DNA of 64,000 nucleotides from Amphiscolops sp. MND2022 (taxonomy: Eukaryota): contig OZ076418.1 of NCBI GenBank assembly GCA_964187785.1, positions 36,146,001 to 36,210,000 on the forward strand, given 5' to 3'. Position 1 is the first letter of the stretch. Each line of letters opens with the position of its first letter. Below, piece by piece: positions 324-55,793 of the stretch. The position numbers were made by a program, and so were the translations under genes. Under the pieces are notes generated by a model. The model did not search any database and was not told the origin of the DNA. It was given only the letters and a program-made list of their open reading frames with translations.

Positions 324-3300
324 AGCTACAGCCACTCAGCCCGGGAAACATTTTGGAATGCAAGACCTGAAAAGAATAGGATTGGTTTTCGGAGAATCTC
401 TCTTTGAGTACTCGAAAATCATTTCGGATCAAATGTAAGTTCAGCAAGCTTCATATATTTTGAGATTATAATTATGTGAATTGAGTTAGTTCTCTATTGT
501 TTTAACGTCTCTCTTCTTCCATTAAAAGGTCTAAAAAACTATCGTGAGTCTTTCGTTTTCTAACAATAGCTGTTAATGTTTCCCATAATTTTCATTTAAC
601 AGAATACCAGGGTTGATTTTTGAAAAAAAACTGCTCTGAGGATTTTTTCGAGAGAGGCATACTTCAGAAAAAAGTGGATTCTCGCAAAATGCTAAATGCA
701 TAATCGCTGTGTACCCTAGTTCATGAAAAAAATGCAATCCATACAAGATTCTTGCAAGATCTTTGCAAGCAATGCATTGTTCGCAAGGATCTAGAAAGGA
801 GTCCATTTTGAGCAATCATCTTGCAAGATTATTTCAAGGAACCCAAAGAAAGTACATTATCTTGCAAGATCCTTGCAATGAACGTATTTGTTCTCGATCA
901 GGGTATATTAAACATTCGTTGAAAAATCTAGTAAGAATGTGTAGTATTTTGACGTTGTAGACCTTGAAAATTTGTAAATTCTTGCAAGATCTTTCAAAGT
1001 ATGTGTACTTCACTAGCAAAGAAAATACTTGAACATTACTCCAACGTTGCATACCAATCCGCTGTTTTATCCGAGATACTCTACTAGAAAGATGGCAAGT
1101 TTATAAACTGACTGAAAGTCATGTAAACTAGATTCTAAACAAATTTATAAGCATGTCAGATTTGTTTAAATATCGTATGATATTTCAAATTATGAAGAAC
1201 CATTTTCTTTTCAATGTGCTATGAAGTTGCGATCTCTAATATTCTTTATTCGGAACCTTTCGTACCGTTCTTTGAAAAGCGTTGGTCGCGACGCAAAATG
1301 CTAGAGACCAATTTTGTCGAGTTGATCATGTTCTTTTTTTAACTCCAATTTTTTCTTTTAGAACCCTTGAAGAAAAAATACAAAAAAAATCAACCTTGGT
1401 TTTTATCATTTGTCCACGACAAATAACATCCATGACTAGTTATAACTAGTAAATAATTATGTATAATTAACACTAATCTACAAATTAATACTAATCTACA
1501 ATCACGAGTAGCATCTCGATTACACTGAACGCATGAACACTTAATTTTTTGGTTTCATCTTAAAATTTCATCATATCACAGAAATATTTAGTTCACTATT
1601 TAGGTTACAACGTAGCGTACTATTTTCCGTTCGACCCTTCCTTACCTTCAAAAAACCAAGAGTTAGTTTATTTAAAAACAAATTCAGGCTTTTTGAATTT
1701 TCAAATGCCAAAAAAAAACAAATCAAAAAATTGAAATGGCACTTTCTGGTTGCTTTAAAAAATCCAAACTAAATTCTGGTAGATCTCAAAAAAAATCAAA
1801 AATTAAGTTACGCTGCCTCAAGTTGTATAGATAATTATCACTTATTCAGTCGTGTAAAAGACCAGTATGTTCGATTTTGATCCTAAACAGTTGGTTTTTT
1901 GGCATGAAAACTGCATTTTGAAAATGAGATTTTTTTCGATATAATTTTGGGCCAGAAACAACAATTTTGAGAAGAACGATTACTTGATAGCTTTCCTTTT
2001 AGGGCACAGCACGACTACATTCTAGAGCTGACCCGAGTTATAGCGCATCAGATGATTGACCAATCATGTCTCGCGAAGCAGGAAGATGACGTAACCGAAG
2101 ATGTTCGGCAAGGTTTGCTCAACGAAGCAGACATTAAAGCCAAGAAGGAGGAACACCTCGCTTTTCTGAAGGCTGCCAAAGCTGAGAAAGATAAAGCCGG
2201 TCTGTTTTGTTTTAATGAAAAATGAAAAGAAGCCTAATTCAAGAAATCTTGCCAGAATTTTTCAGTTTTCTTTCCATGATTTAAACTCTTCAGTCGGCAC
2301 TTCTGCAGATATTTGAATAAGGCCTGTCGAAACGATAGATTTAGGATGAAAAATATTTAAAACTTTCTTTTGACGCCACCGAAAAGTCACTCCTTTGAAG
2401 GTTATGGTTTTTCACGGTTTGCTAAACTAGAAGATACCGAGGAATAACTCACTTTGGTTTCCTTTTGACACTGTGATTTTTCCTGAGAAAAAATTATTTC
2501 ACTATAGAAGGCCCCTTTTGGTTTTTTGATGTTTTCAGTTTCAAAGAAGTGTGTTTCGAGCATAAAATTCCCCATTGGGAAATTTTAGACTGTGAGAGTT
2601 TTTTTAACAATTCAACAACTTTCTTTATACACATATACCTCTGTACCTCTATATAAACAACTTTTTGAAAGCAATCGATGCTCAGAATCATCGAGCAAAG
2701 CGCGAGCTGAAGTTAGTCTGAAAATTCAGTTTAACCAAAATACCTCACGATTTTGTTTGTTAGTACGATCATTGTACGATAGTTTCCTCGTACAATGATC
2801 ATGATCATGCCAAGATGTTACCATGACGACCATGTTTCATAGTTATTATTGACCATGTTTTCTAGATCAAAAAAGTGGGTGTCAGGACATTTCAACCTAT
2901 GCATTTTCAACCGTTGCCATTTCAACTGCTCACAATTTCAACCTATTGCATTCTCAACCGTCCGCAATTTCGACCTAAACTAATTTTGGCTTTAGTCTTA
3001 ATTTAGTCCTAATTCGGTTGAGCTATTATCTCAGTACAATATTTACTAATGAGTCAAACAGCCCTAATTAATGGTAATTATTCATGAAGAAGCCAAAACG
3101 TATCAAAAGTGGCGCAAAAATTAGCACATTTGAATTTAGAAATGTATGAAAGCTAAAACCACCAAAATAATTATGTAACTAATTATGATCCATTAGCCAA
3201 AATTAGTTTAAGTCGAAATTGCGGACGATTGAAAATGCAATAGGTTGAAATTGTGAGCGGTTGAAATGGCAACAGTTGAAGTTGCATAGGTTGAAAGTGC

Positions 3301-6300
3301 ATAGGACGAAATGTCATGTAACCCTGATGTCCCTATGCTGTATTTTCAGCGAAGCACTCAATTCGTTATTGATATACATCGTGACAAAAACGTAGCCTCC
3401 TTTGGTTTCAAAGTGAACTCTTTTGAACCTAAGCAACCTGAGCCTCATCCATTTTATCACGAACTGGTTTTTCTTTTCAGTTGCCGAAGTTGCAAGTTTA
3501 TTGACCAAGACGAAAAACCTGAAAGATTGCTTAAAGCTTTTGGAGAAGATAAAACGAGCCGATATGTCTGTCCTTTCCGAGTGAGTAAAAAATCCTTTTT
3601 TAATACTTTGACATTCAAGATATTTATTTATTTATTCATTTGTTTACTCATTTTTAGCACAGATGACTCAGACAGTACTTCAGAATCGGAGTTTCTGGAT
3701 CCAAAAAGTGCCAAAACCAAAAAGAAGTTGAGATCACGACGGAAGTTCATCTTACAGGAGCAGCGAAAAGTATGTTGAATTTCTTTTTATTAAAGATTTA
3801 AAATTGAGTTGTTACAATCTGAGCACATTGAAGAGTTTTTAGAAGAAAAGAACACAATTTCAGTGAAAAGATTTTTCTGAATTTTGCAATGATTATAGAT
3901 AAATTGAAAGGAACTAAATTTATTGAAATCCCTGCGCACTTGAAAATATCTATATTGGTTAATTTAGAATAATTAATCTAAACAAACCAGTATAGATTTC
4001 TTTCAAAACGTAAGCAAAACAGTTAAACTTTTTTTCTCGCGTAAACTTTTTCATATACGTTCATTTCATCCAGGTCATATACAAACTTGCAAAACTACAG
4101 CGAAAATAGTAGAGAAAACCACGTGAAAACTCAGTACTGACACAATGTTCGTTTTCTCGTGATGTTCTGAGTTCTATCATAAGAAACTACAGTCCTCTTG
4201 AAACCCGAGGAATGTACACTTGAAATTCATCCCATTCCTATAATCTCACGAAATGTTTATCCAGATTCCTGTGCCCGAATCAACAATGTCTTCTGGCAAG
4301 CAGGAACTGGTGTCTCCCTCTAAGAAGAACCTGGCCTCCATGTCTATGTACCAGTCACCATACCAAGGCAGGAGTGGCGGGGGGTACCCCATATTCACAG
4401 AGGAGCGCATCTTGGACCGCAAGTTCAAAGTCAGTAGTCAATTGAAGTTTGAAAACATTAAATACCTTTAAATGCATGAACAAAAAAGATGTAGTTTTTG
4501 TGAAAGCTACCTAACACTATTACAGATGAAACAACTTTTGATTTCAATTCATCTAGATGGATACTGCCTCCTTTTCATATTCATTTCAAATGTTTGAAGT
4601 ACATTGTATTAAAATGTTCAGCTTTTCCCACCTGGAAGATCATAACTGAATCTGTTACGAGATTCAAAAAAAACTTATGAAGGTAACTTCTCAGATTACA
4701 CAAACTAGAATTCAAAAAGCATCCTGCATTTTAGATAGGATTCGAGATCTTACTCTCAAAGTCAAGCGAAGATCTTGTTTCAGGTGTATAGTCAAGATGT
4801 TTTTGTTGAGTACACAAATTTCCATGAGTAATGGTTGTTTGTTGAAATTTTTCTAAATTTTTTAAAACTCAATAGTGATAATGAAGGAAACTTATCAAAT
4901 TTGTTTTAGAAACCAGCCAAAAGAGTAGCAGTTGGGCCGTATTCACGAAACACTTTAATGCAGAATGGGTATGCATCGATGATCATACCAACTGCAGCCA
5001 CAACTGACAATGAAGATCTTTCTGTTAGCTCCGATTCCATCTAATTCGACCTTCAATTCTTCTAGAATATTCTAGAACATTTATTCTACGAACTTCTAGA
5101 ATCTTCCACATGATTTACGAATCGAACTGAAACTTTTAGTCAAGCATAATAAATTGATGTCAATTGTTAGATGATATATTGCAAACAAAATGTCGATACA
5201 GAACTTAAGAAACTTTGCATCCACGAAACTAAAAATTATCGGAAAATGTTACAAACTATCGGCATTTTCGATGACGTCATATGCAAAATGCAAAAACTTG
5301 TTGATTTTCAGACGCAGACATTCATGCAAAAAATCTTACGTAGAAACAACAGCAACAACAACAACAACAACAACAAATTTTGAGTAATTCTTTGCTACTG
5401 GCAAACTAAAAATTCTAACTGATGTTCTCTGATATATTACAATTATACGTGTATCAATTGGGCTAACTTCTTATCGTATGGTTCCTCAGGAGTCAGTGCG
5501 TGACCCTTTACATATCGTTCACCCGGGTACCAACTCCCCCCAAGATTCGATGGGTAAAGGACAGCACCTGTGTACCAGCTACAGGGAAGACCAGTACCAA
5601 CCATCTTCTTACGTGGAAAAGGAGCACTTTCTGGTGACGTCACCGGAAATCCCCGTGACAGAGCTGGAAACTGTCAAATCCAAATTGCGCCAAAATAAAC
5701 TAGTAAGTCGCCGAAAAACCAAGTGTTTAACTTCTACAGTGATTTCTTCCTCAAATGGAAAGAGGCAATCAATAAAACCTTACACAGCACATTTATCCTA
5801 TATGAAAACCAAAATTTGTCGTTCTTATTGACGATATATTGGACTAACTGGGAACAGTTGTTACTTCTGTCAATATAGGTTTTTCCGAGCCACCGGCAGA
5901 AAGTAACTGGAAAAAAGTGAAAATTTTCAAAAAACTTGCTTTTCTCAATAACTGAGGAAATGTTTGCTAAGTTACTGTCCCACTCTAGCAACACTGTAGG
6001 CCACCATTGAAACCGCATATAGAAGTTTTTTCAATGAAGCTTCAGCTATGTTCGATCGGCATTTCAAAAGAAATTATTTCTAACGAGAGAAAAAACTCAT
6101 ACGAGAAGAAAAAGTGCGATTTCTATTGGAGAAGAACACATTTATTGGAGAAAAACCCATTGAAGAAAAACCCAGTTTATTTTTGAAATTATGACACTAT
6201 GAGTCCAATTTACAGCATTTCTACAGAAAAAGATTCATTTTTTCAGATTTCAAAGCACAGTCGAGCAACGTCGGCGACCCCAACATGCACCAAAGACTCC

Positions 6301-8802: not shown

Positions 8803-10752
8803 ACGATGAGGAAAAAGTAGAGTTTGTAGGATAGGAGTTGAATTGTAGAAATCGAAGAGCAAGTTACTAGAATTTACAGGTAAAGGTAAGTGATAAAGAT
8901 AGTAAGCTTTGTAACGTAGATTTTGGTCTAATGGTATTTGGTCGGTAGCTTCTCGGAGGTAGGTGGTTAGACGTTTTTCTCACCACCTGGCACTCTCATC
9001 GGTTTAACAACGAGGTACTACTTAGAATTCGATATCGGTCACGTGACCGGTTAACGTCTTTTATGTTGGAGGGCTACCAACTTCAAAATTACGCGCCAAA
9101 GTAATTTCAACTTGATTTGCATGAATACATAATGAGTTTGAAGCACGTTGTGTAATTTACACCTTTGAGTCATTGAAAAGTGGTTAGACTAATCAAATGA
9201 CATCAAAAAGAAGAAGTTTGAACCTTTGGAAACTAATTTGTGCTTTTTCATTGTGGCGGAGATAAAAGAGATGCTTTCACTGTGATTAGGTGGCTAATGA
9301 ATGGTAAAAATGTACTGCATCATTTAGATATCGTTTTCTACTGTATGTGAGGGTAATCCACCACGTAGATGTGAAAACGAAAACTGATTTTCACTTTGTG
9401 AGGATAACAGAATTGATGACGTGAAAACGATGACATGTTGTAAAGGGCTTTCGTAAAGGGGGACGGAAATTCATCATTTTGCCATCGTTAGTGCATAATG
9501 GAGAAATCGATGAAGGGGCGATGAAGGAGCGATGAATGAATTCCATCGTTCTTTCATGGTGGGGTATGAGATGAGATTATTCACCAGGACGATGTAGAAA
9601 CGATAGAAGAATCCCATCTTATTTACATTGTCAGCGTTTAAGCACTATCAATTGAAAGAACTTTACAACAGTTGCTATATTAACGATGAGGAAAATTCAT
9701 CTTTTTATATCGTTTTATGAATTTTTGTTAGCTGCATCGCTCATGCGATGGGATATTGATGATATTTGAAATTAGGTCATGCAAGTTCGTCCTGAGGCTC
9801 GACGCGCCGTCGTCTTACATTTTTTGTCGTTTTATCATCGGTTTGCATAATTTCAATGTTTTGGTTTTCCTCTTACTTGTGACATATTTACCGCTGGGTG
9901 TTTGAACCCTGTTTCAAACAGATGCACAAATTTGGTTGAGGAGGCTCATAATACATAATACATTTTTCTAACTCAGGGTAGGGGATTAGGATAGTAACGT
10001 AAACTTGCGCACAACCATAAACTTATTATATGACTTCATATTGCCCATAATTATGTACATAAGATATTTAAAGTACATTACTTATATTAATAGATCTATA
10101 TTTCCTTCATGAGATTTAGTGCTTTTTAAGGTGAGCTGAAGAAAGAAACCCAGTCACTGTATTTGCTTTTTTATTTGCTGCAAAGAAAACGCCCATTGAA
10201 AATTACAGTCAGAATAGCTCTTGTGATCAAATGTTTTCCGTTGAAAATCATGTTTGGAATTTCAAGAGTCCATCCGTAGAGCTGTATCAACAAATAGCGT
10301 TGCCATGAAGCAGTCTCATCGTGAAATGACCAGATCTTTTCATCTTTTTGAGGTTATCAACAGTTTAGATGGAGATTTCCTAAAATTCCTACACAAACAC
10401 ACAAATTTTTCGGGAAACAATTTTGTCTGTTGTGCTCGACTTTATTAAGCTCCTTTAAATATTCAACAAAAAATTTGTAACGTTTTGTCGGATTTGAAGT
10501 GTCTTACTCTTTTTCCTCATTCAGCTGAGGGATCCTTGAATTACCGTCATTTTGATGCAAAAGAGCTTGGGTCACAATAAAAACTGAAAACTAACGTCCA
10601 CTTCTGCGTGCTACTTGAGAAGCGGTGATTACATCAGATGAGTAATTGAGAAATCATAGCGTGAAAACAATGTCTTTATCAAAAGAGTAACATCCGTTAT
10701 TTTGGTCATTGCATAGGCAACACAAATTTTACTCAGAATACACATCAGAAAC

Positions 10753-21500: not shown

Positions 21501-24500
21501 TGAGTGAATGAATAATTTATTTATTTGTTACCCGTACAAATTACGAACAATAAAAAAATGATAATTAGCTAGTACTAGTTGTATAAGCTTTACTTATGAT
21601 ACCGCACAGGGCGGAAAGTTTTTTTAATAATTCAATATTCACGGTGTTCATCAGCTGATCAAATTTCACCATATTCAGATACGAGTAATAAAAATCCGGA
21701 AAGAGTTCTACCCTACTAACTCTAAAATATTCACATACCATAATCATTGCTTTACGGCAATCATTCATCTACGGCTTTACATTGCTTACAGCAAAACAGA
21801 CAATTTTGGTTATAGTTGTCCGTGATTCTCTCTGTCACTCTCGGTGACGTGTACGGTGCGCAGCGAAATTGGCACAGTTGCACCCTTTGTTTACTCTTCA
21901 ATTTTTTAAGATAAAGTTATAGAAGCAGCCGATGTTTGAAACCCCTTTAGCAGTCGCAAATGGAGGTGGAATGTAGCATCGTATGCCAGGATTGAATTCG
22001 GCGTCTCTGTTGTAATTCACGTATGTATCTACCATACGTATTTTGCAGCTAACCATAATATTTTTCACACTCAGAATCCATTTGTTCTCGTATTCGTTGG
22101 AAATGATTAGCCAAAACATCGAATTCGCAAAACTTTTTTCATCGTACGAAAGTTTTTCGCAAAAAAATGACATTCTTTGACATATTGTAAATTTCAGTTC
22201 CTGTTGCCCTAACTCCTCATATGTCATTGCTTAAAGGGCACTTTTTCAGAAACATTATGAAAAGAAGTGGCGATAAACTGTCACCTTGACGTGCACCTAT
22301 CTTGCAATGGAAGACATCACTTAATTCTCCATTGACTCGAACACATGCTTTGGTTTTCTGATAGAGGCTTTGGATGACACGTGAAACTTTTACCTATTAT
22401 TTTCGCTTGTCCTAATTTTTGCCAAAGTAATCCATGGTCTACCTTATCGAAGGCTTTTTCATATTCAATGAATGTAACAAAAAGTTTCTTCTTCTGTGCA
22501 AGGTATGTGCTCAAGGTTGATGATATAATGAAAACAAGATCAACGCATTAAGTATTTTTTCTGAAACCTGCTTGTTCCAATCCTAACACATCTCGTTTCT
22601 CTAGGTCTTTTTGAATTCTTTCAGTGAGCACCGATTTGAAGAGCTTACAGACACAACTGGCTAGAGATTTACCCCGGTAGTGGTTGGGGTCCATTTTTTC
22701 TCTTTTTTGAAATTGGGCTGGTATATTGAGGTCGCCCAGTCATCGGGCACTATACCTCTATCAAGTATTTTATTGAAATAAGCTATTATCATGAGAAAAA
22801 GTTCATCGGGAAAAAACTTTAACAACTCAGGGTAGATATCATCGAGACCAGCTGGTTTACCATTTTTAATCTTTTCCATACATAAACGTACTTCACTCTC
22901 TGTAATGGGTACATTCAGGTCAGCATTGTCATCATTCATATTCACAGAAGCTTGCGGAGACCCGAGAGCCTTGTTCAGGTATTTGAAGTGATCGTATAAT
23001 TTAGATTTCTCAAAGGGGATATTGTTTAGTTCGCTTGAGTCTTTTGAAAAAAGACCAAAATTCTTTCGGGTTGTCAAATTTTTTCTGGCGTAGTAGCTGA
23101 TTAGTTTCAGACTCCCATTTACTTTTCCTTTGCAGCAAAAAAATTATATTTTTTACCGGCTGCTTTCCTCTCGCAATGATTGGATGTTTTATTTGCTTCC
23201 CGTAACTTTCTGCGGTAAATGCGGAGTCGGATTTGGCAGTCACTATCAAACCAGTCATTGCGTGGTTCAAATGCGGGTTTACGTTTATGTTTTAAAGCGC
23301 CAACTGACTTGGCACTATCGAGTAATACTTCTGTCAGCAGGGCATTACCTGAATTCACTACTGTATCTGTTTGCATTTGAGCCTCGAAACAAGCTTGAAT
23401 TTCCAAAAATCCTTTGTTTTTAAGTGTTTCAAAACTTTTTTCTTAGCTTCATTCCAAACTCGTTTCATTTGAGTCGCACTTTGAGGCGATTCGACCTTTG
23501 GAGGTACTTTGCAGCATCCAAGTTCGAGTACTAGACAGCAGTGAACATCAGATATAGATGGATCGAAGTTTTCACAGAGAGCTTTAGAATTGAGTCGAAG
23601 CAACAGTGCTCCGCGAGAACGTAATCAACACTACTTTTTCCATTATGTTGTACGCACGTGTATTCACCGAAATGCTTGTCTTCTTCGATTCTACCATTGA
23701 GGATAGCAATTTCTGTTGTTTTACACAGGTCAACTAGCAGCCTACTCTTTGAGTTGATCTTTGTATCTCTATTTGCTCTAGATTCTATATTATTTAACTC
23801 ACCGTCTAGAAGAAGACAGTCGTCTAGGATTCCAGTTGGGGCATTGAAATCACCTATTAATAAAATATTACAAGACGGATTTTTAAACTTAAGTATGTCT
23901 TCTTGGATTTCATCAAAATAATTGCCATCCCAATGTCTCGAGCTTTCAACGGTCTAAAGTAAAGTCCAATCGAGTAGTCAACGCAGTTAAGTTATACATC
24001 AAACCAAAGTCCCAGATTGCTTCCAGTAAAGTGGTATTTCAGGCTCTTACGTATTAGAAAAGCAAGGCCCCAGAAACCTTTCAGTTTCGACTTATCAGTT
24101 CCAGTTAAAGTTTTGTGCCCATTGAATTGTTCAGCGTCAAAAACATTAGTTGGTGTTTACACTGACTACTCGTTGGATTCTTTTCAAATTTATTTTGATG
24201 TTTAGCCGCCTCACATTCAAAAGACAAAGTGTGATCTTTGAAGCCATTAGGACAAAATCGCGTTGTTGATTGCTATTTTGCAAACATTTCTTTCATTTTG
24301 GCACGATCCCATCCCAATTTCGAGGGAAGTTCAGCCAGAGAGTTGAACACACCATGCTTCCTATCGTGGGTGTGTGGGTGTATAGTAGTCGGGACTCAAA
24401 AGTGCTGATTCTAATTCCTGCTTCCTTCATATGGTAAATGGCTTTCGACCTCGCTTTTGTTAGATGTTCTTGTACATAGATATTGTAATGATTCAGCGAT

Positions 24501-24960
24501 TCTTTAAGCCAGTGTTTCGATTCAAAAACTTCATTTTTCACACTTCTGCGAGTAAATATGGCAATAATTGGCCTCGGCTCGTCTCTTCGGCGGGTTCTGA
24601 TATGTAGGCAGTGGCTGGTTGAGACGTCGGCAGCAGTAATATTCACGCCCGTAGCATGGGCAGTTAGGACTATTTTCTCAGTGCAGTCCTCGAACTCCAT
24701 ATAGTATAGTCTAAAGAACGGTAGACAGTCTCTTCTACTATACTGCTCCATAGCCTCCAGTCTACATTCAGTTTCGGCATCAAAACCAATCTCACGTAAT
24801 AGTAAATCTTTCTCGGTACACGGAAGATGGTTTTGTTGCTGTTTGTAGCATTTGTGACACTTTCATGACCACACGTTCATCCAAACTAGTCTGAGTAACA
24901 CAGGTTTTCTTGAGGTTGTCCAACTCATGTTCCAAAAATTTGTTTTCTTGCAATAAACTG
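21501..24960 (-). mobile_element. Decayed, 5'-truncated, internally deleted APE-type LINE (CR1/L2-group-like)
   Basis: ORF1 remnant (coiled coil, MEQYSRRDCL, RPIIAIF, EHLT; 24293-24950); ORF2 remnants: APE start MASKITLCLLNVR, GDFNAP, GKPAGLDDI, FIEYEKAFDKV, QGDSLSPLLF, then a jump to the C-terminus (YADD region missing); 3' tail AATAAA + (ATTC)n near 21501-21525. Confidence 0.85.
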
Positions 24961-39975: not shown

Positions 39976-40550
39976 ACTTGGCAGAAGTTACAAGTTACTA
40001 AGCAACAGTTTATGAAACTGATTAAGTTCGTCGTAAAAAAGTCACCACTATAGCCTGGTCTATTCTTTCTACGATCCAGTTTATCTCTGCTATTTTCCCC
40101 CAAACATTTCAAAAGTGCATTTACAGGGGGCAGCCCGTGTCCAACTTTCTGCCAAACAAAACCATTTGGCTTATTCACGGCAAGTTTCAGCGTCCTAACT
40201 TTTTCTGATCAAAAGTTCTAGGACTTTTTTCAAAAAATATATTCAACTTCAGGCCTCTAAAAGTCAGGAAGCGTCCACACTTAGGTTTGCAAGTGGATGT
40301 ACGTGGAAAGCATATGTACAGACGATAAAAACGCCACTATGAAAAGTGCCAAACTATTAGAATGGCTAGTTTTTTTCCGCTGTACCACTTTTTGTGCACT
40401 TTTACTTAATTTTGAATGCATCCAAAGCCTCTAACATCGGCTGCAAATCCAATGCAAAGCAGAAAGAAACTACTACTACTACTACTATAAGACTGAATTG
40501 ATACTAGTCAACACAAAAGAACAACTTGATGATAACATGTACAGATTTTT

Positions 40551-43380
40551 TTAACAACAGCTACATTTCAGGAACATTTTACAGCCACTATCTTCATATT
40601 TAGTTTTGTAGTGATTCCAGTAAATTCTCTTTAGATCGGATTCAAATGCGGCAGGGTGGTTTGGCAGTTTAATGTTGTATTCTTGTTGTACAAAATTGCT
40701 AAGATTGATGATTCGATTGAAGAAAAATTCCCGTGTACACTTTAAACGTGTGTAGTCAGACATGAAAATATTTTTGGTGTTACTTCTGAGCTCATAATTA
40801 TTGTTGTGTTGATTTGAACACACATAATCCCATATGGTGAAGTCATAAAGGCCCATTGTGAGCTTGTTGAACAGTAGCAGATCCTGCATTTGAAGATGTA
40901 AAGAGATCGGTAAATGGTGATATTTGTCAAGAAGTTGATGAAATGAGCTCCTATAGTCAATCCACTTGAAACAGATCCGCTGCAGCCTTTGTATTTTTTT
41001 TTAAGTCTCCTCTGTTCGGATGCCAAACACCTGAAGCATAAGCAAGTGCGGGTAAAATGTAGATGCGGTACAGTTTAAATTTCATGTCAGGGTTAAGCAT
41101 TTTAGGAAGGTTCCGACGTAGCATGGCTAGGCGTTTATAACAATTTGCTATTTTAATATTTATGTGATCGGTCCATGTCAAATTTGGAGAGACCCAGACA
41201 CCAAGATCACGAATACTCTTTGTTGTAGGATAGATATCATTTTCTCCCATGTGTAGGACAAGGTTATCACATTGCATCTTTGATTTACTGAAGTGTAATA
41301 ATTTCGTCTTCTGCAAGTTAAAGTCGAGTTTGTTTTCTTCACTCCACTTCATTAGTGATAACAAATCGTTCTGAAGCTCGAACAGAGATGAACTTGCCAG
41401 TTTAAGGTCGTCAGCGAATAGAAATGGAACACACTCACAATTCTCGGGCAGGTCATTTATAAACGCAATGAAGAAAAGCGGGCCGACCACTGAACCTTGG
41501 GGCACACCACTTGTAATAGGACACTCTTCTGATTGACAGTTTTCAATTTTAACTTGTTGCACTCGGTTCTGCAAATATGAAGCTATTAGTTTGAGTAGAG
41601 ATCCACCCAGACCCAGAGATCGAAGTTTTTTCAGTAGTATAGAATGAGGGACTCGATCAAATGCTTTAGAATAATCCAAATAGATTGCAAAGGCTTTTTC
41701 TTTGGAATCGATCCACTCAAAGATTTTAGCAAAGAACGACAGTAACTGGATGATACATGATCGGGATTTTCGAAAACCAAATTGATGGGAGGATAGTTTG
41801 TCCTGTAGATGCTTGGAAATGCTCCTGAAAAGAATTCTTTCAAATGCGAGTGAAAGTTTGCTCAACGAAGCAATTGGACGGTAGTTGGCTATCTCATTTT
41901 TCAATCCCTCTTTGAATATGGGTGTGATAATGGTTTTTTTCCAGGATGTAGGATACACTCCAGTTTCTATGATAACCTTTGATAGGTTGTAGAAATGTAT
42001 GGAGAGACTGTTTGAACACTTTCGTAAAATTTGACCATGAATACCATCAGGGCCAATGCCATCGGTTGATAAATCTAGAGCCTCTTTTGCGATTTCGGTA
42101 GATAGTTCTACATCATTCAGTACATTATCAGTAAAATTGGTGAATGTATCGTCAGAAGCATTGAATACTGATCCAAAATACTGATTGAAGGCGTTTGCAA
42201 TTTTGGAACTTCCAGTAATTTTTTTCTTTTTGGGATCAATCATTGTCTTCGGAATGTCGGAAATTTTGAGTTTTCTAATCAGTTTGTAACAATCATTTAC
42301 ATCACCATTTACGGCACAAAACTTGTCGAGGAATACATTTGTGTCCAACTCAATAGAATTTTCAAGTTCTTTACAGATAGTATTGTATTTCATATAATTT
42401 TTCAAGTTGAGGCCATTTAGTTGCTTTAATTCTGTTTGGAGGCAGTTGAAGAGATGAATACTGTGAGAGCTCAAGTAATCCGGCAACATTTTTCGCTTTT
42501 GCCGTTTGCTAACTAAGAACTGTTTGAGAATGTTTTGAAATGAAATCAGCCAGTCCGCAATGAAGTCGACAGAATTTTGGTCTAGTTCGAACGAGAATAG
42601 TGACTGAGCTAGTGTTAGGTCAATCGAATTTAAGTCGGTTGCTGCGAGACTGTATTGTTTGAGGTCAGTTTGTGTGTACATTGTTCCAGAGTTTTTAGGG
42701 ATACCCACAGATATGCTGAAATGATCAGAAAAAGTTGGATGTTTTTCAATATCAAGAACTTCAGGCTCGTCATAGTTTGTAAATACCAGGTCAAGGACAT
42801 TACCATCTTTGTGGGTTGGTTCCTTTACAAGCTGGGTGAAATTTTTAGCAGTAAGGAATTTTTCGGTTTCACAGAAATATTCTGTACTGATCGCTGGGAA
42901 CTGTGCCCAATCCTCGTTTGGTAAGTTGAAATCGCCCATAATTAATACTTTATCAATGGAAGCGTTACTGAGAACATTATAGGCCGAGGATAAGCAATTT
43001 GAGATTACATCATCAGGAACACGATACTCACTAGGGTTTGGAGGATTGTATAAAACAATAATTCCATAGGTATCAATTGATATACCACAACAAAATGTAT
43101 TGTCCAAGCATTCTATTTTTGATGCAACCAGTTCTTTTTTTGCCATAATAGCCACACCTCCATGCTGATTTGTTTCACGCACGGCTTTTGCTATGACTGA
43201 GTAGGCAGCTGTGAGAAAAGTATTGTCTGAGGAAGATTCATCCCACCAGGTTTCAGTAAGGCAGAGAATATCGGGTAATCTTGATTGGAGAATACACGAT
43301 AAGTGAAGTCTTTTTTCTAGGGATAAGATACTGCGGCAGTTTAAAAGAAAGATGCGGTGGACGTTTTCGTAATTTTCTAG
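40551..43380 (-). CDS. LINE ORF2p (APE endonuclease + reverse transcriptase), AUG-less, in frame with ORF1
   Basis: Open from 43380: LLNCRSI, CLTETW, HGGVAI, MGDFN, LDLVF, SDH, GPDGI, NYRPIA, YLDYSKAFDRV, GVPQGS, FADD. Stop at 40957 is caused by one extra A in an A9 run; removing it joins the frame to 40551-40889 (~942 aa). Confidence 0.9.
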
Positions 43381-44232
43381 TCAGTTCACCTCTACCAGTT
43401 CGTTGTCTTTGTAGAGTCTCAATTTTTTTATTTTCAAACGGCTACGATCTATGCCACTCCTGATCAATTCGTAACGTTTGGCTAACAGTTGTCTTTCCAG
43501 TAAAAGGTCCTTTGGGGACAGTTCAGGGGTGATCAAAACCCTTTTGTTTAGGAAATATTTTTTCTCGATGGCCTTTGCGATGACTTTGCGAGCATCCCAT
43601 ACAGATCCAAATGTTACAAGTAGGTTCCGAGTTCTATTTTTATCAAATTTCCCAAGTCGTTGAGTTTCGATAACATTTCCGGAGCAATTTAAATCATCAA
43701 GAACCTTTTCGACTTCGGACTTATCATGCAGTTGTCTATCTATGAAAAACTTGGAATCCATTTCCTCAATTCCGGATATTCTGATTTTGTAATGATAATT
43801 ATTGTCCTCAGTTATGGTCGTTTCAGGTACATGCCGATCTCGTGTTTTAGGTTCTTTCGTAGATATAGGAATTTTGTTCGGCAACTTTTCTTCAATGACG
43901 TTTTCGACGATTGTTTTGATATCTTTTTTAAGTTCATCTAGTTTAGCATTTTCGGTTGAGTCATCAAAGGCTGATTTTTTGCTAACACACGAATCACAAA
44001 AATAGGAGAAATTTTCAGACGAGGATAAGTAAACGAAGACTTCCTTTGGTATTTTCAGACACTGAGAGTGAAGCCAGTGAGAACATTTTTCACATTGAAT
44101 CCAGTCCCTCGTTTGTTGCGATCCATGACATACAGAACAGAGTCCATGATCCACAGCACATGTTCCACCCAGTTGAGTTGTCCCATCACTGTTGGAAGAG
44201 GAGACCAGTGCACTTCTTGTGAGAACCATCAT
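43381..44232 (-). CDS. LINE ORF1p with PHD finger, short coiled coil and RRM-like C-terminal part (283 aa)
   Basis: CSVC..WIQCEKCSHWLHSQC..YFCDSC (C4HC3 PHD); IRISGIEE, RLGKF..RTRNLLVTF, ITPELS..R..LL..RY motifs; first ATG 44232. Confidence 0.88.
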   Translation of the reverse strand: MMVLTRSALVSSSNSDGTTQLGGTCAVDHGLCSVCHGSQQTRDWIQCEKCSHWLHSQCLKIPKEVFVYLSSSENFSYFCDSCVSKKSAFDDSTENAKLDELKKDIKTIVENVIEEKLPNKIPISTKEPKTRDRHVPETTITEDNNYHYKIRISGIEEMDSKFFIDRQLHDKSEVEKVLDDLNCSGNVIETQRLGKFDKNRTRNLLVTFGSVWDARKVIAKAIEKKYFLNKRVLITPELSPKDLLLERQLLAKRYELIRSGIDRSRLKIKKLRLYKDNELVEVN

Positions 44233-44914
44233 CAAGTTTTCATATAACCGGAAACTATTTAATAAGTTTATCACAACAATTATCACAACAATTAGAAAGA
44301 TCACAATTCAAATTTTTCACAATCTTGACCGAACAACTACTGCTCTCAAAGAAGCTAGTTATACATTTTCCGTAAGAGGAGGGATTTCCCTAGGAAGAAA
44401 CAATAGCAACAACTGCTCGACATCAATCATCTAAATTTGGTAAGTGACTCACTTGAAAATTTGAGAGGTTGAAGTCCCGCCACGCTTTAGTAACAGTTGT
44501 CAAAGTGGATGCCATTAAAATTACATTTTCTAAAAAAACAGTTTAACATCATCGATACGGTATATGATTACAGTTAACAGTCATCTTTACCAACCAACCA
44601 TATATCTTCGGCTCACCGTGAACCTAGATTTACATGACATTAGCACACAGACTTTCATACCATGAATTTTTTTCCATCTAATCTTTTCAATTTCCTTCTC
44701 AGATGACATAGATCGTGAGGTGCCATGTAGGTCATCATGTAGGTTTACATTGTAAGGGGATGACACACAACAACAACAACAAAAAACAAAAACGACAAAG
44801 CACATCTTCTACTCATGACACTCACTATCCCAGTTAACCGACAGAAGCAAACCAAAAAATCACAACCCACGCTGCTAGTTCAGTTGCAAAGATGGAAGCC
44901 AGTCCTAGAATCCG

Positions 44915-54175: not shown

Positions 54176-54898
54176 TGTTCGGAAAAGTTATCCTAATTTG
54201 AATAACATTGATAATCATAGAATAATTCTGCCGTTGTTGTAAAGTTGATCTGCCATCGTTTTAAAGCTGTTTCGATTACGTAACAACAAATGACAATCGA
54301 AAGATGTTGCAAACGTTCGAAACAACAAAGTCTTGACGAGTGAGCTCAATGCCGACTGCTACGAAAAATGAACTGAAAGCTCGCACTTGTTGTTTCTGCA
54401 AATGTTTTTGACCTTCAAACATTGACAGTTCGGTTCAAACCTTTCTTTCCACCCTCTCAATAGTCTATGTCTTAAAGTTAATGTCACAGAGGATTACAGT
54501 CTCATTACACCAAAAAGAGGGAAAGTTTTCCCTGAAAACCAGAAAGGTTCGAGACAGATTATGTTTGACTGACTGCTACTTTCGAAAACTGCGTAAGACT
54601 TTCTGTCTAGGGCATAAGCGGGAGAAAGATGCTCAAGAATATACGTTCTTTTCATCCCAAAAAGATAGTCATTTTTCCATATTCATAACAGTACAAAATG
54701 CCTCGAAAATCTGTCATTTCACATAATTCATTGTCGATGAAATAACATTGTCAGCGAAACCTTTCATAATTCATTTGTATCACTCTGTAAAGTGATCAAT
54801 ACTGCTGAATAAACGATTTCTTGTACATTCTCTTTCGACCACACTGCTTAGCAGAACTTCGCCTTCAACCAGGGATCCTGGCAGGACACCCAGGAATA
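54176..54898 (+). repeat. BEL 3' LTR (723 bp)
   Basis: Starts TGTTCGGAA after PPT AAGAACGGGCCCCGGGA; colinear with the pieces of the 5' LTR; ends AATA followed by the TSD. Confidence 0.9.
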
Positions 54899-55200
54899 TA
54901 ATTCACTACTTCACCTAAAGCCGTACGTCCAATACCACCGGCTGGAAGATGTATCCGTTGTCAATCAATCCTTGAAACTTCCCGAAATTCCGGTATTCTG
55001 CATCGGTGGCGGTGGTGCCAGGATTACCCAAGGACACTTGATTCAAGCAAATGGGTGCAAGGTGACATCCGTGACAACCCAAATCAACTGTTTACCCATT
55101 TCACAAGGAATCTTGGTAACACAGTCTCGACGTTTGCCGTCTGTTCGGTACAGTCTACAGGGTTTCAGCATTGGAGGCAAGTCGAGCGATCCCAATGTTT
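54899..55200 (-). mobile_element. CRE-like RLE domain fragment (right half)
   Basis: IRQTLGSLDLPPMLKP..LYRTDGKRRD.VT.IP..MGKQLIW.VT ... GNPGTTAT.AE ... LIDNGYIFQPV: PD-(D/E)xK-type endonuclease C-terminus, degenerate. Confidence 0.75.
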
Positions 55201-55793
55201 GCCTTATGAAGAGGTGAAGAAAGAATTTGAATTTACTCTGATGCGTATGGAAATAGCATATTCCCCAGAGACTATTTGCTTTGATATCTACTCATCGCTC
55301 TTCTTCATAATTCTCTTTAGGACAACTTGTCTAAACGTCTAAACTTTCGGCAAATTTGTACATTCTCTTTCTATTTTCCCATTCAGAAATTCTTTTAACA
55401 CGTGTTTATAAAATTTTTCTTTTTTCAAAGTGGACCTTGAAGCTCAAAATCCCCTAAGAACCATAGCAACGTACTTATAAGAGCAATACAGCTTCTTTCA
55501 AACCACCAGAACAAACATCAATGGACAATAAAGTTAGTTTCATCACACCTGTCAAAACATCGATTATTTCCATGCAGAAAAGGACTGTGTTTTCACAGTC
55601 TGTTGATAAACTAATCAATAGAATTTCCTCGTTTTGCTTGGCTTAATTTGAACGCAGTAAAATTACTGTTCGAAAAGAATATTGACATTTCTTTGGTTGA
55701 ATCTCTTTAAAAATTGATGTGCCAACGTTTTTAAAACACTACTTCAATTGAGGCCGAACCTTAGTTTTAAGGCTGATAGTTTCTGTATGTATA

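Follow-up and report, generated by a model that had tools for sequence, protein, structure and literature searches.

A conserved in-frame UGA-CUAG junction between ORF1 and ORF2 of a CR1/L2-like LINE, a candidate site of stop codon readthrough

How the second open reading frame (ORF2) of a bicistronic long interspersed element (LINE) RNA is translated is a long-standing question, to which L1, SART1, Zorro3, and 2A-bearing elements give differing and partly unexplained answers. The Ta11/ATLN LINEs of Arabidopsis have been described as carrying an in-frame nonsense codon between their ORFs. For the "Group 3" elements of Paramecium, which lack long terminal repeats (non-LTR), expression of ORF2 by readthrough of the ORF1 stop was inferred from the consensus, with frameshifting or reinitiation in the sister groups (Guerin et al. 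2017, PMC5405496). The CR1/L2 elements include subgroups with a single ORF encoding PHD, APE, and reverse transcriptase (RT) domains, as well as ORF1 types carrying PHD and RRM modules (Metcalfe & Casane 2014, PMC4120745). In mammalian cells, UGA-CUAG alone gives percent-level readthrough without any structure, and about 12 nt are enough (PMC4132726). Here, we analyze a LINE that lies within a 64,000-nt stretch of Amphiscolops sp. MND2022 (contig OZ076418.1, positions 36,146,001 to 36,210,000; this whole stretch is termed the window). A preliminary description of the window had proposed that the UGA-CUAG between ORF1 and the AUG-less ORF2 of this LINE is read through. Comparison with genomic copies and distant relatives supports this interpretation, because the UGA-CU(A/G), the shared frame, and the AUG-less start of ORF2 are conserved; the product would probably be a gag-pol-like fusion of the ORF1 protein (ORF1p) with the APE endonuclease and RT.

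The junction and its persistence among genomic copies

The LINE lies on the minus strand, and its boundaries are marked by the depth of read contigs, which rises from 22 to 96 in the flank to 400 to 5000 within 40470..44283, with loose ends at 44281-44283 and a drop below ~40500. The features that make up the junction are as follows.

40470..44283, minus strand: whole LINE insertion, about 3.8 kb, from the jump in read-contig depth; the order is short 5' untranslated region (UTR), ORF1, ORF2, short 3' UTR, (TAG)6 tail
43384..44232, minus strand: ORF1, 283 sense codons, from translation; PHD finger, helix, disordered linker, RRM-CTD
43381..43383, minus strand: ORF1 stop UGA, with ORF2 in the same frame, from the sequence and genomic copies
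43377..43380, minus strand: CUAG immediately 3' of the ORF1 stop, from the sequence; CUA is the first ORF2-frame codon (Leu)
40957..43380, minus strand: ORF2 frame as open in the window copy, 807 sense codons (43380 to 40960) plus the stop at 40959-40957
42661..43380, minus strand: APE endonuclease, ORF2 residues 1 to 240; Pfam PF03372 (Exo_endo_phos, residues 30 to 220), E=1.1e-12

ORF1 starts at the ATG at 44232, with a second ATG at 44229, and the junction codons are GAG GTG AAC TGA CTA GAA AAT TAC. The minus-strand reading agrees with the preliminary description on the stop at 43383-43381 followed by CTA GAA AAT TAC and on the "808 codons" that stay open past it (the 807 sense codons and their stop). 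It also bears out that the endonuclease motifs LLNCRSI (ORF2 codons 12 to 18) and CLTETW (codons 40 to 45) both precede the first in-frame ATG of ORF2, which is codon 79, leaving 78 codons without an AUG; neither an AUG nor a near-cognate start is found among ORF2 codons 1 to 6. The catalytic Asn14 of the APE domain is encoded at 43339-43341, and in the model of ORF2 residues 1 to 240 (mean predicted local distance difference test [pLDDT] value of 88) β-strand 1 is formed by residues 7 to 14 (43339-43362). Since this strand starts at codon 7, the N terminus of the ORF2 protein (ORF2p) should lie at most 6 codons past the stop, or else upstream of it. For annotation, this means that starting ORF2 of such elements at the first ATG would delete the endonuclease active site.

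At least 40 copies of the junction are distributed across many chromosomes, most of them 95 to 100% identical and five 81 to 84% identical. TGA occupies the junction in 38/40 genomic copies, the remaining two having TAA and CCA, and CTAG follows the stop in 33 of the 40. Between young and old subfamilies, the synonymous divergence (dS) of the junction region is 0.3 to 0.5, and the ratio of nonsynonymous to synonymous divergence (dN/dS) is 0.2 to 0.5 in the ORF1 C terminus, 0.2 to 0.4 in the ORF2 N terminus (ORF2 codons 1 to 93), and 0.13 to 0.7 over the first 13 ORF2 codons. On these ratios, the flanks of the stop have evolved as coding sequence on both sides while the stop persisted. The preliminary description had suggested examining sister copies for variation at the stop or its context; in this comparison TGA-CTA is retained while nearby codons change, and decay of the stop codon was rejected because it is conserved even in the subfamilies of 81 to 84% identity.

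That the stop is no product of decay, which had been held likely, is therefore borne out, whereas the accompanying description of an otherwise nearly intact element needs correction: the window copy is broken late in ORF2, where the frame shifts within an A9 run, leaving the final ~145 codons in another frame. This late frameshift also affects the fusion of ~1225 aa that had been predicted; the readthrough product of the window copy would be about 1091 aa, without the C-terminal part.

40994..41002, minus strand: A9 homopolymer, site of the ORF2 frame break in the window copy, from frame comparison
40551..40993, minus strand: C-terminal part of ORF2, in the other frame in the window copy; it ends at the stop at 40553-40551 and consists of the ORF 40551..40889 plus the open frame upstream
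40470..40487, minus strand: (TAG)6 microsatellite 3' tail, from the sequence; reads are cut at the repeat
43363, minus strand: subfamily marker, C in the window copy and its closest relatives (ACG), T in most family A copies (family A being that of the window element)

The length of the A9 run (40994-41002) differs among copies in the read contigs, and of the 33 copies that share an anchor downstream, 12 have no interruption in the ~2.6 kb covered. Relative to the flank, contig depth reaches about 20-30x where the element starts (5') and about 60x at its 3' end, which suggests 20 to 30 copies with full-length ends and about 60 3' ends, a 5'-truncation pattern typical of LINEs; the element is a recently active LINE with many young copies. 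At the subfamily marker, a T makes an out-of-frame ATG at +17 after the stop, giving an 8-codon upstream ORF, and the read contigs of all four runs carry 43363 G>A on the plus strand. A ~30-nt piece of the 5' UTR (44251-44281) has a depth of about 36000 to 66000, against 22 to 96 in the flank and 400 to 5000 in the element body; it also belongs to a far more abundant repeat, perhaps a 5' end that several LINE families have in common or a short interspersed element (SINE).

The remaining domains encoded by the element are the following.

43987..44139, minus strand: PHD finger, ORF1 residues 32 to 82; Pfam PF00628, 35 bits against a cut-off of 24, E=1.5e-8
43384..43791, minus strand: RRM-CTD module, ORF1 residues 148 to 283; AlphaFold 2 (AF2) model with pLDDT of about 80 to 90
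41197..41901, minus strand: RT, ORF2 residues 494 to 728, with FADD motif; Pfam RVT_1 (PF00078), E=1.2e-30

In the AlphaFold model of ORF1, the PHD is followed by a long helix, a disordered linker, and then a β-α-β-β-α-β domain with a C-terminal extension. In Foldseek, this model is closest to the human L1 ORF1p trimer (2ykq/2yko/2ykp, E about 2e-5), and the Pygo PHD is also matched. The Cys/His columns of the PHD are invariant in the four-lineage ORF1 alignment, and N14, E43, D150, and N152 of the endonuclease are among the conserved alignment columns. The element has APE and RT in ORF2, an RRM-type ORF1 with PHD, dispersed copies, 5' truncation, and a microsatellite tail, and by its sequence it is classified as an APE-type LINE, probably CR1/L2-like (Jockey superfamily). 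The tree of the element covers unnamed relatives only.

In-frame and out-of-frame junctions in related families

The nearest relative of this ORF2 outside the genome is P0003 (35% identity), located on contig L041 of another organism, which has no match to the window genome at the DNA level. Its homologous PHD-RRM ORF1 ends TCT TGA CTA TCA, and ORF2 follows in frame 0 with the catalytic Asn at codon 11. The L041 ORF1, searched against the window's own genome, recovered over a thousand candidate PHD-RRM ORF1 homologues in discrete length classes (262, 263, 265, 273, 296, 305, and 316 aa), which constitute a large radiation of one LINE group in this genome, and from these candidates two further families, B and C, were read. 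The junctions are AAA TGA CTG GCA in family B and ACT TGA CTA GAC in family C; in both, ORF2 is in frame and the Asn is at codon 10. Identity among A, B, C, and L041 is 27 to 28% in ORF1, 33 to 36% in the APE domains, and 30 to 38% in ORF2. The residues around the stop are unrelated in the four, yet the alignment column just past it is an invariant Leu codon. The ORF2 tree groups the four in one clade (SH-aLRT support of 100%), on terminal branches 0.7 to 1.45 substitutions per site long.

Some individual copies have features of their own. In the family B copy at G000:C7:58363364-58363783 (minus), the ORF1 match falls within a 1128-aa open frame, where the UGA appears to be replaced by a sense codon (fused ORF1-ORF2). 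A homologue of the 316-aa ORF1 class, matched in two pieces, occurs on G000:C1406 at 9227-10141, 54387-55301, 99541-100455, and 144686-145600; the exact spacing of 45.16 kb shows an element embedded in a large tandem repeat unit. A-runs of 7 to 9 nt within the ORFs are hotspots of length variation and the source of many frame breaks among copies, as in the window copy of family A and in L043, L051, L055, L068, L069, and L072 of family B, in which the run lies just past the stop (TGA CTG GCA AAAAAA).

The comparison was then widened to about 45 related LINE families, and each locus was examined for the position of its catalytic Asn, for the ORF1 upstream, and for the frame of the one relative to the other. 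A metagenome scan with the APE alignment supplied 80 loci and four look-ups five more, and a metagenome scan with the ORF1 alignment found no relative. Single-stop in-frame junctions are present in L075 (TGA CTA CCT, with an ORF2 of 970 codons), L086/L140 (TGA CAA), and L130 (TGA CTC), and less clean ones in L134/L135 (TGA CTA CAT) and L118 (TGA CTC); UGA-CUA is found in L041, family C, L075, and L134 as well as in the window element. Neither L075 nor L134 matches the window genome at the DNA level. L075 and the L086+L130 pair fall outside the A/B/C/L041 clade, so the in-frame trait needs at least three changes on the tree. The catalytic Asn lies 10 to 14 codons past the stop in all in-frame lineages, and no AUG precedes it in family A, L041, family B, or L075.

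All robust in-frame lineages have UGA with C at +4 (7/7, or 9/9 with the less clean ones), whereas the 36 out-of-frame families end ORF1 with TAA (16), TAG (11), or TGA (9) and have UGA-C in 2/36; a hypergeometric test of this difference, in which shared ancestry is not corrected for, gives a P value of about 1e-6 to 6e-8. In 8/9 in-frame lineages the stop is followed by CUA, CUG, or CUC, and in none by UUA or UUG. Against the elements' own codon usage, the probability that the Leu codon is always CUN is about 0.02, and that of CUA in 5/8 is about 0.002. The UGA-C and the CUN/CUA preference are constraints at the nucleotide level, of the sort that a readthrough signal imposes and a restart mechanism would not.

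Several loci were set aside. L080, an apparent ORF1-APE single ORF, is without the Asn motif, looks rearranged, and was left out of the count; L133, L089, L124, and L156, in frame but with additional stops or long spacers, were not counted as single-stop junctions; L158, from another assembly, is 95 to 96% identical and rearranged, and both of its junction copies have TGA-CTAG, but it may be from the same species and is not independent. Natural single-ORF PHD-APE-RT relatives exist, and a PHD covalently upstream of the enzyme is therefore a viable architecture.

The out-of-frame relatives point in the same direction. ORF2 is in the -1 frame in 30/36 of them, usually overlapping ORF1 by 25 to 120 codons and with no AUG. 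A canonical X_XXY_YYZ heptamer in the ORF1 register lies within the overlap in 21/30 of the -1-frame families, mostly in its first dozen codons, compared with 0/30 and 4/30 in the two shifted registers. These heptamers are A_AAA_AAC, U_UUU_UUA, U_UUA_AAC, and C_CCA_AAC (e.g., L153:1166-1172, L123:1209-1215, and L095:1275-1281), and in L153 a 16-bp stem-loop begins 3 nt past the heptamer (z = -2.8). The ORF1 stop of L153 is located 14 nt before the Asn, within the region coding for β-strand 1, so a restart past this stop could not yield the whole endonuclease there. The heptamers suggest that programmed -1 frameshifting is widespread in CR1/L2-like LINEs, and with such sites in 21 of 30 families, fusion of ORF1 and ORF2 by recoding looks like the rule in the group; the in-frame UGA-CUA lineages would be the readthrough counterpart of their frameshifting relatives.

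The window holds a second, decayed LINE at 21800-24800 on the minus strand. Its ORF1 (24751-24293) ends TGA-AAG, and after 16 codons an in-frame ATG follows (MASKITLCLLNVRRL...). ORF2 is in frame with ORF1 here also, but the readthrough context is poor, the ORF has its own AUG, and several frameshifts lie downstream. The preliminary description had regarded this element (its 24220 region) as one with a normal, ATG-started ORF2; the ATG is indeed there, 10 codons before the catalytic Asn, and normality is not, as the copy is decayed and its ORF2 lies in the ORF1 frame.

Readthrough and the alternative explanations

On the readthrough reading, the LINE RNA would be translated from the ORF1 AUG, and most ribosomes would terminate at the UGA, releasing ORF1p, a PHD-containing and L1-ORF1p-like RNA-binding protein. 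In a minority, a near-cognate tRNA would decode the UGA, which its CUA(G) context would make leaky, and translation would go on in frame to give the ORF1p-APE-RT fusion. This fusion would be the sole source of the enzyme, would set a low enzyme-to-coat ratio, and would keep the enzyme attached to the ORF1p oligomer on the RNA that encodes it. How the element is built, and that deep lineages keep UGA-C(U), frame 0, and an ORF2 start without AUG, are matters of observation; from them we infer that readthrough occurs and that the fusion is the functional product.

Some results weigh against this reading. No unusual structure was found in the 60, 100, or 150 nt past the stop in four lineages when compared with dinucleotide shuffles (z of -0.8 to +1.0), and the stimulatory stem that the preliminary description had suggested looking for in the downstream 150 nt did not appear; the missing structure fits the mammalian UGA-CUAG genes, because about 12 nt suffice in those. 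The in-frame lineages are not phylogenetically independent, so the P values given above are optimistic. An in-frame AUG occurs past the stop and ahead of the codon for the catalytic Asn in family C (3 codons before the Asn) and in L086/L140. Finally, human L1 ORF2 can start without an AUG after ORF1 termination (PMC5972666, PMC1965478), and therefore an AUG-less ORF2 alone needs no readthrough.

The last two points bear on the alternative that a free ORF2p is made by termination-dependent, AUG-independent reinitiation at, or within the first 4 to 6 codons past, the UGA, which we consider rather unlikely and yet the main rival. The ORF2 N terminus must sit at the stop, given that β-strand 1 runs from codon 7 and the Asn lies 10 to 14 codons past the stop, and in L1 the ORF2 AUG can be exchanged for other sense codons (PMC1965478, PMC5972666). 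The first codon of family B, CUG, is the best near-cognate start, and the AUG codons of family C and L086 are close to the Asn. However, a restart requires neither a shared frame nor a weak stop, and the in-frame lineages nonetheless all have UGA-C, and most of them have CUA, which is not a near-cognate start, as the next codon. There is no restart AUG overlapping or near the stop, and in family A none in the first 78 ORF2 codons; a SART1-like downstream structure was likewise not found in a search that covered the downstream side, with upstream 18S-complementary motifs not searched. The stop within β-strand 1 of L153 bars a restart there, and the slippery heptamers point to fusion. Removal of the stop in a subset of transcripts, through A-to-I editing of UGA to UGG or through a small splice, would likewise require ORF2 to be in frame and would account for UGA as the only stop used, and editing has a precedent in the amber/W site of hepatitis delta; it is nevertheless very improbable, since no double-stranded structure for an editing enzyme surrounds the stop, there would be no reason to keep C-U at +4/+5, and no variant or joint at 43377-43383 was found in any contig of four WGS-like (whole-genome shotgun), DNA-like runs of one sample.

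The remaining alternatives question whether ORF2 is expressed from the element at all or whether UGA is a stop. The elements could express ORF1 only or be non-autonomous, relying on ORF2 in trans or leaving it unexpressed, and the layout would then be a historical accident, left by a nonsense mutation in a single-ORF ancestor; single-ORF PHD-APE-RT relatives and the late break in the window copy are in keeping with this, which we judge to have only a slight chance of being correct. ORF2 is under purifying selection right past the stop (dN/dS of 0.2 to 0.4), its frame stays open over at least 900 codons in L041, L075, L086, and L130, 12 of the 33 copies sampled are uninterrupted as noted above, and the arrangement lasts across more than 1 substitution per site. 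A standard sense meaning for UGA, as selenocysteine or in a variant nuclear code, would account for its exclusive use and is scarcely credible: no further in-frame UGA occurs in about 1100 codons of the element, nor in relatives, no selenocysteine insertion sequence (SECIS) or other Rfam family was found in 40300-44800 (only a chance SCARNA7 match far below threshold), and in the out-of-frame relatives UGA serves as a regular stop of ORF1.

Readthrough may be one instance of a broader rule. We put forward tentatively, as something possible rather than expected, that throughout the CR1/L2-like superfamily fusion to ORF1p by recoding is, as a rule, the only form in which ORF2p is made, most lineages using -1 frameshifting (A_AAA_AAC, U_UUU_UUA, or U_UUA_AAC) and several, including the three young families of this genome, UGA-CUA readthrough, with repeated switches of mode as in retroviruses. 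If true, superfamily-wide fusion would give LINE cis-preference a simple physical basis, with the enzyme covalently bound to the coat protein on its own RNA.

Comparison with known systems

As bicistronic LINEs whose ORF2 is tied to ORF1 termination, human L1 and SART1 resemble this element, and the AUG is dispensable in L1. Their junctions differ from the present one: in L1 the ORFs are separated by 63 nt that contain in-frame stops, and in SART1 the AUG overlaps the stop (UAAUG) and a structure lies downstream, whereas this LINE lacks spacer, AUG, and structure and carries a single in-frame, putatively leaky stop. Paramecium "Group 3," which shares the proposed mechanism, belongs to a ciliate clade with the ciliate genetic code, and the proposal there is a one-sentence inference with no analysis of context or conservation (PMC5405496). 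The CR1/L2 subgroups of PMC4120745 belong to the same superfamily and have PHD and RRM modules upstream of the endonuclease; unlike the present element, they have either a continuous ORF without RRM-CTD or separate ORFs, and that paper is silent on the junction and on readthrough. No paper describing readthrough in CR1/L2-like LINEs was found in the open literature.

The heptanucleotide of family A is identical to that of alphavirus nsP3/nsP4, OPRK1, OPRL1, AQP4, MAPK10, and MDH1 (Loughran 2014, PMC4132726), and UGA-CUA-GAC of family C is the sequence of MDH1 and of o'nyong-nyong virus (ONNV). In the vertebrate and alphavirus cases, the extensions are short peptides or a viral polymerase, and leakiness was measured in mammalian cells; here, the extension would be about 940 codons of endonuclease and RT, and the motif is a putative readthrough signal in an invertebrate-like host.

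The layout is also that of gammaretroviral gag-pol (murine leukemia virus [MLV] type), in which a structural, RNA-binding protein and an RT enzyme occupy one frame with a single stop between them, and, as in retroviruses, sister lineages would use -1 frameshifting instead, judging from the heptamers of the relatives. MLV depends on UAG-G and an obligatory downstream pseudoknot, whereas this LINE has UGA-CUA(G) and no detectable structure; unlike MLV, it is a non-LTR element with an APE endonuclease, it has no protease to part the products, and its ORF1 is unrelated. The recoding signal and the logic proposed here are both known, but from outside this class of element, which is without prior demonstration of them, and the proposal differs from the mechanisms of L1, SART1, Zorro3, and the 2A elements. 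Because the family combines a textbook readthrough heptamer, no alternative start, and relatives with textbook -1 sites, the question of ORF2 translation would become directly testable in it. If readthrough is confirmed, non-LTR elements would share the stoichiometry logic of retroviral gag-pol, and the UGA-CUAG signal would extend past vertebrate genes and alphaviruses.

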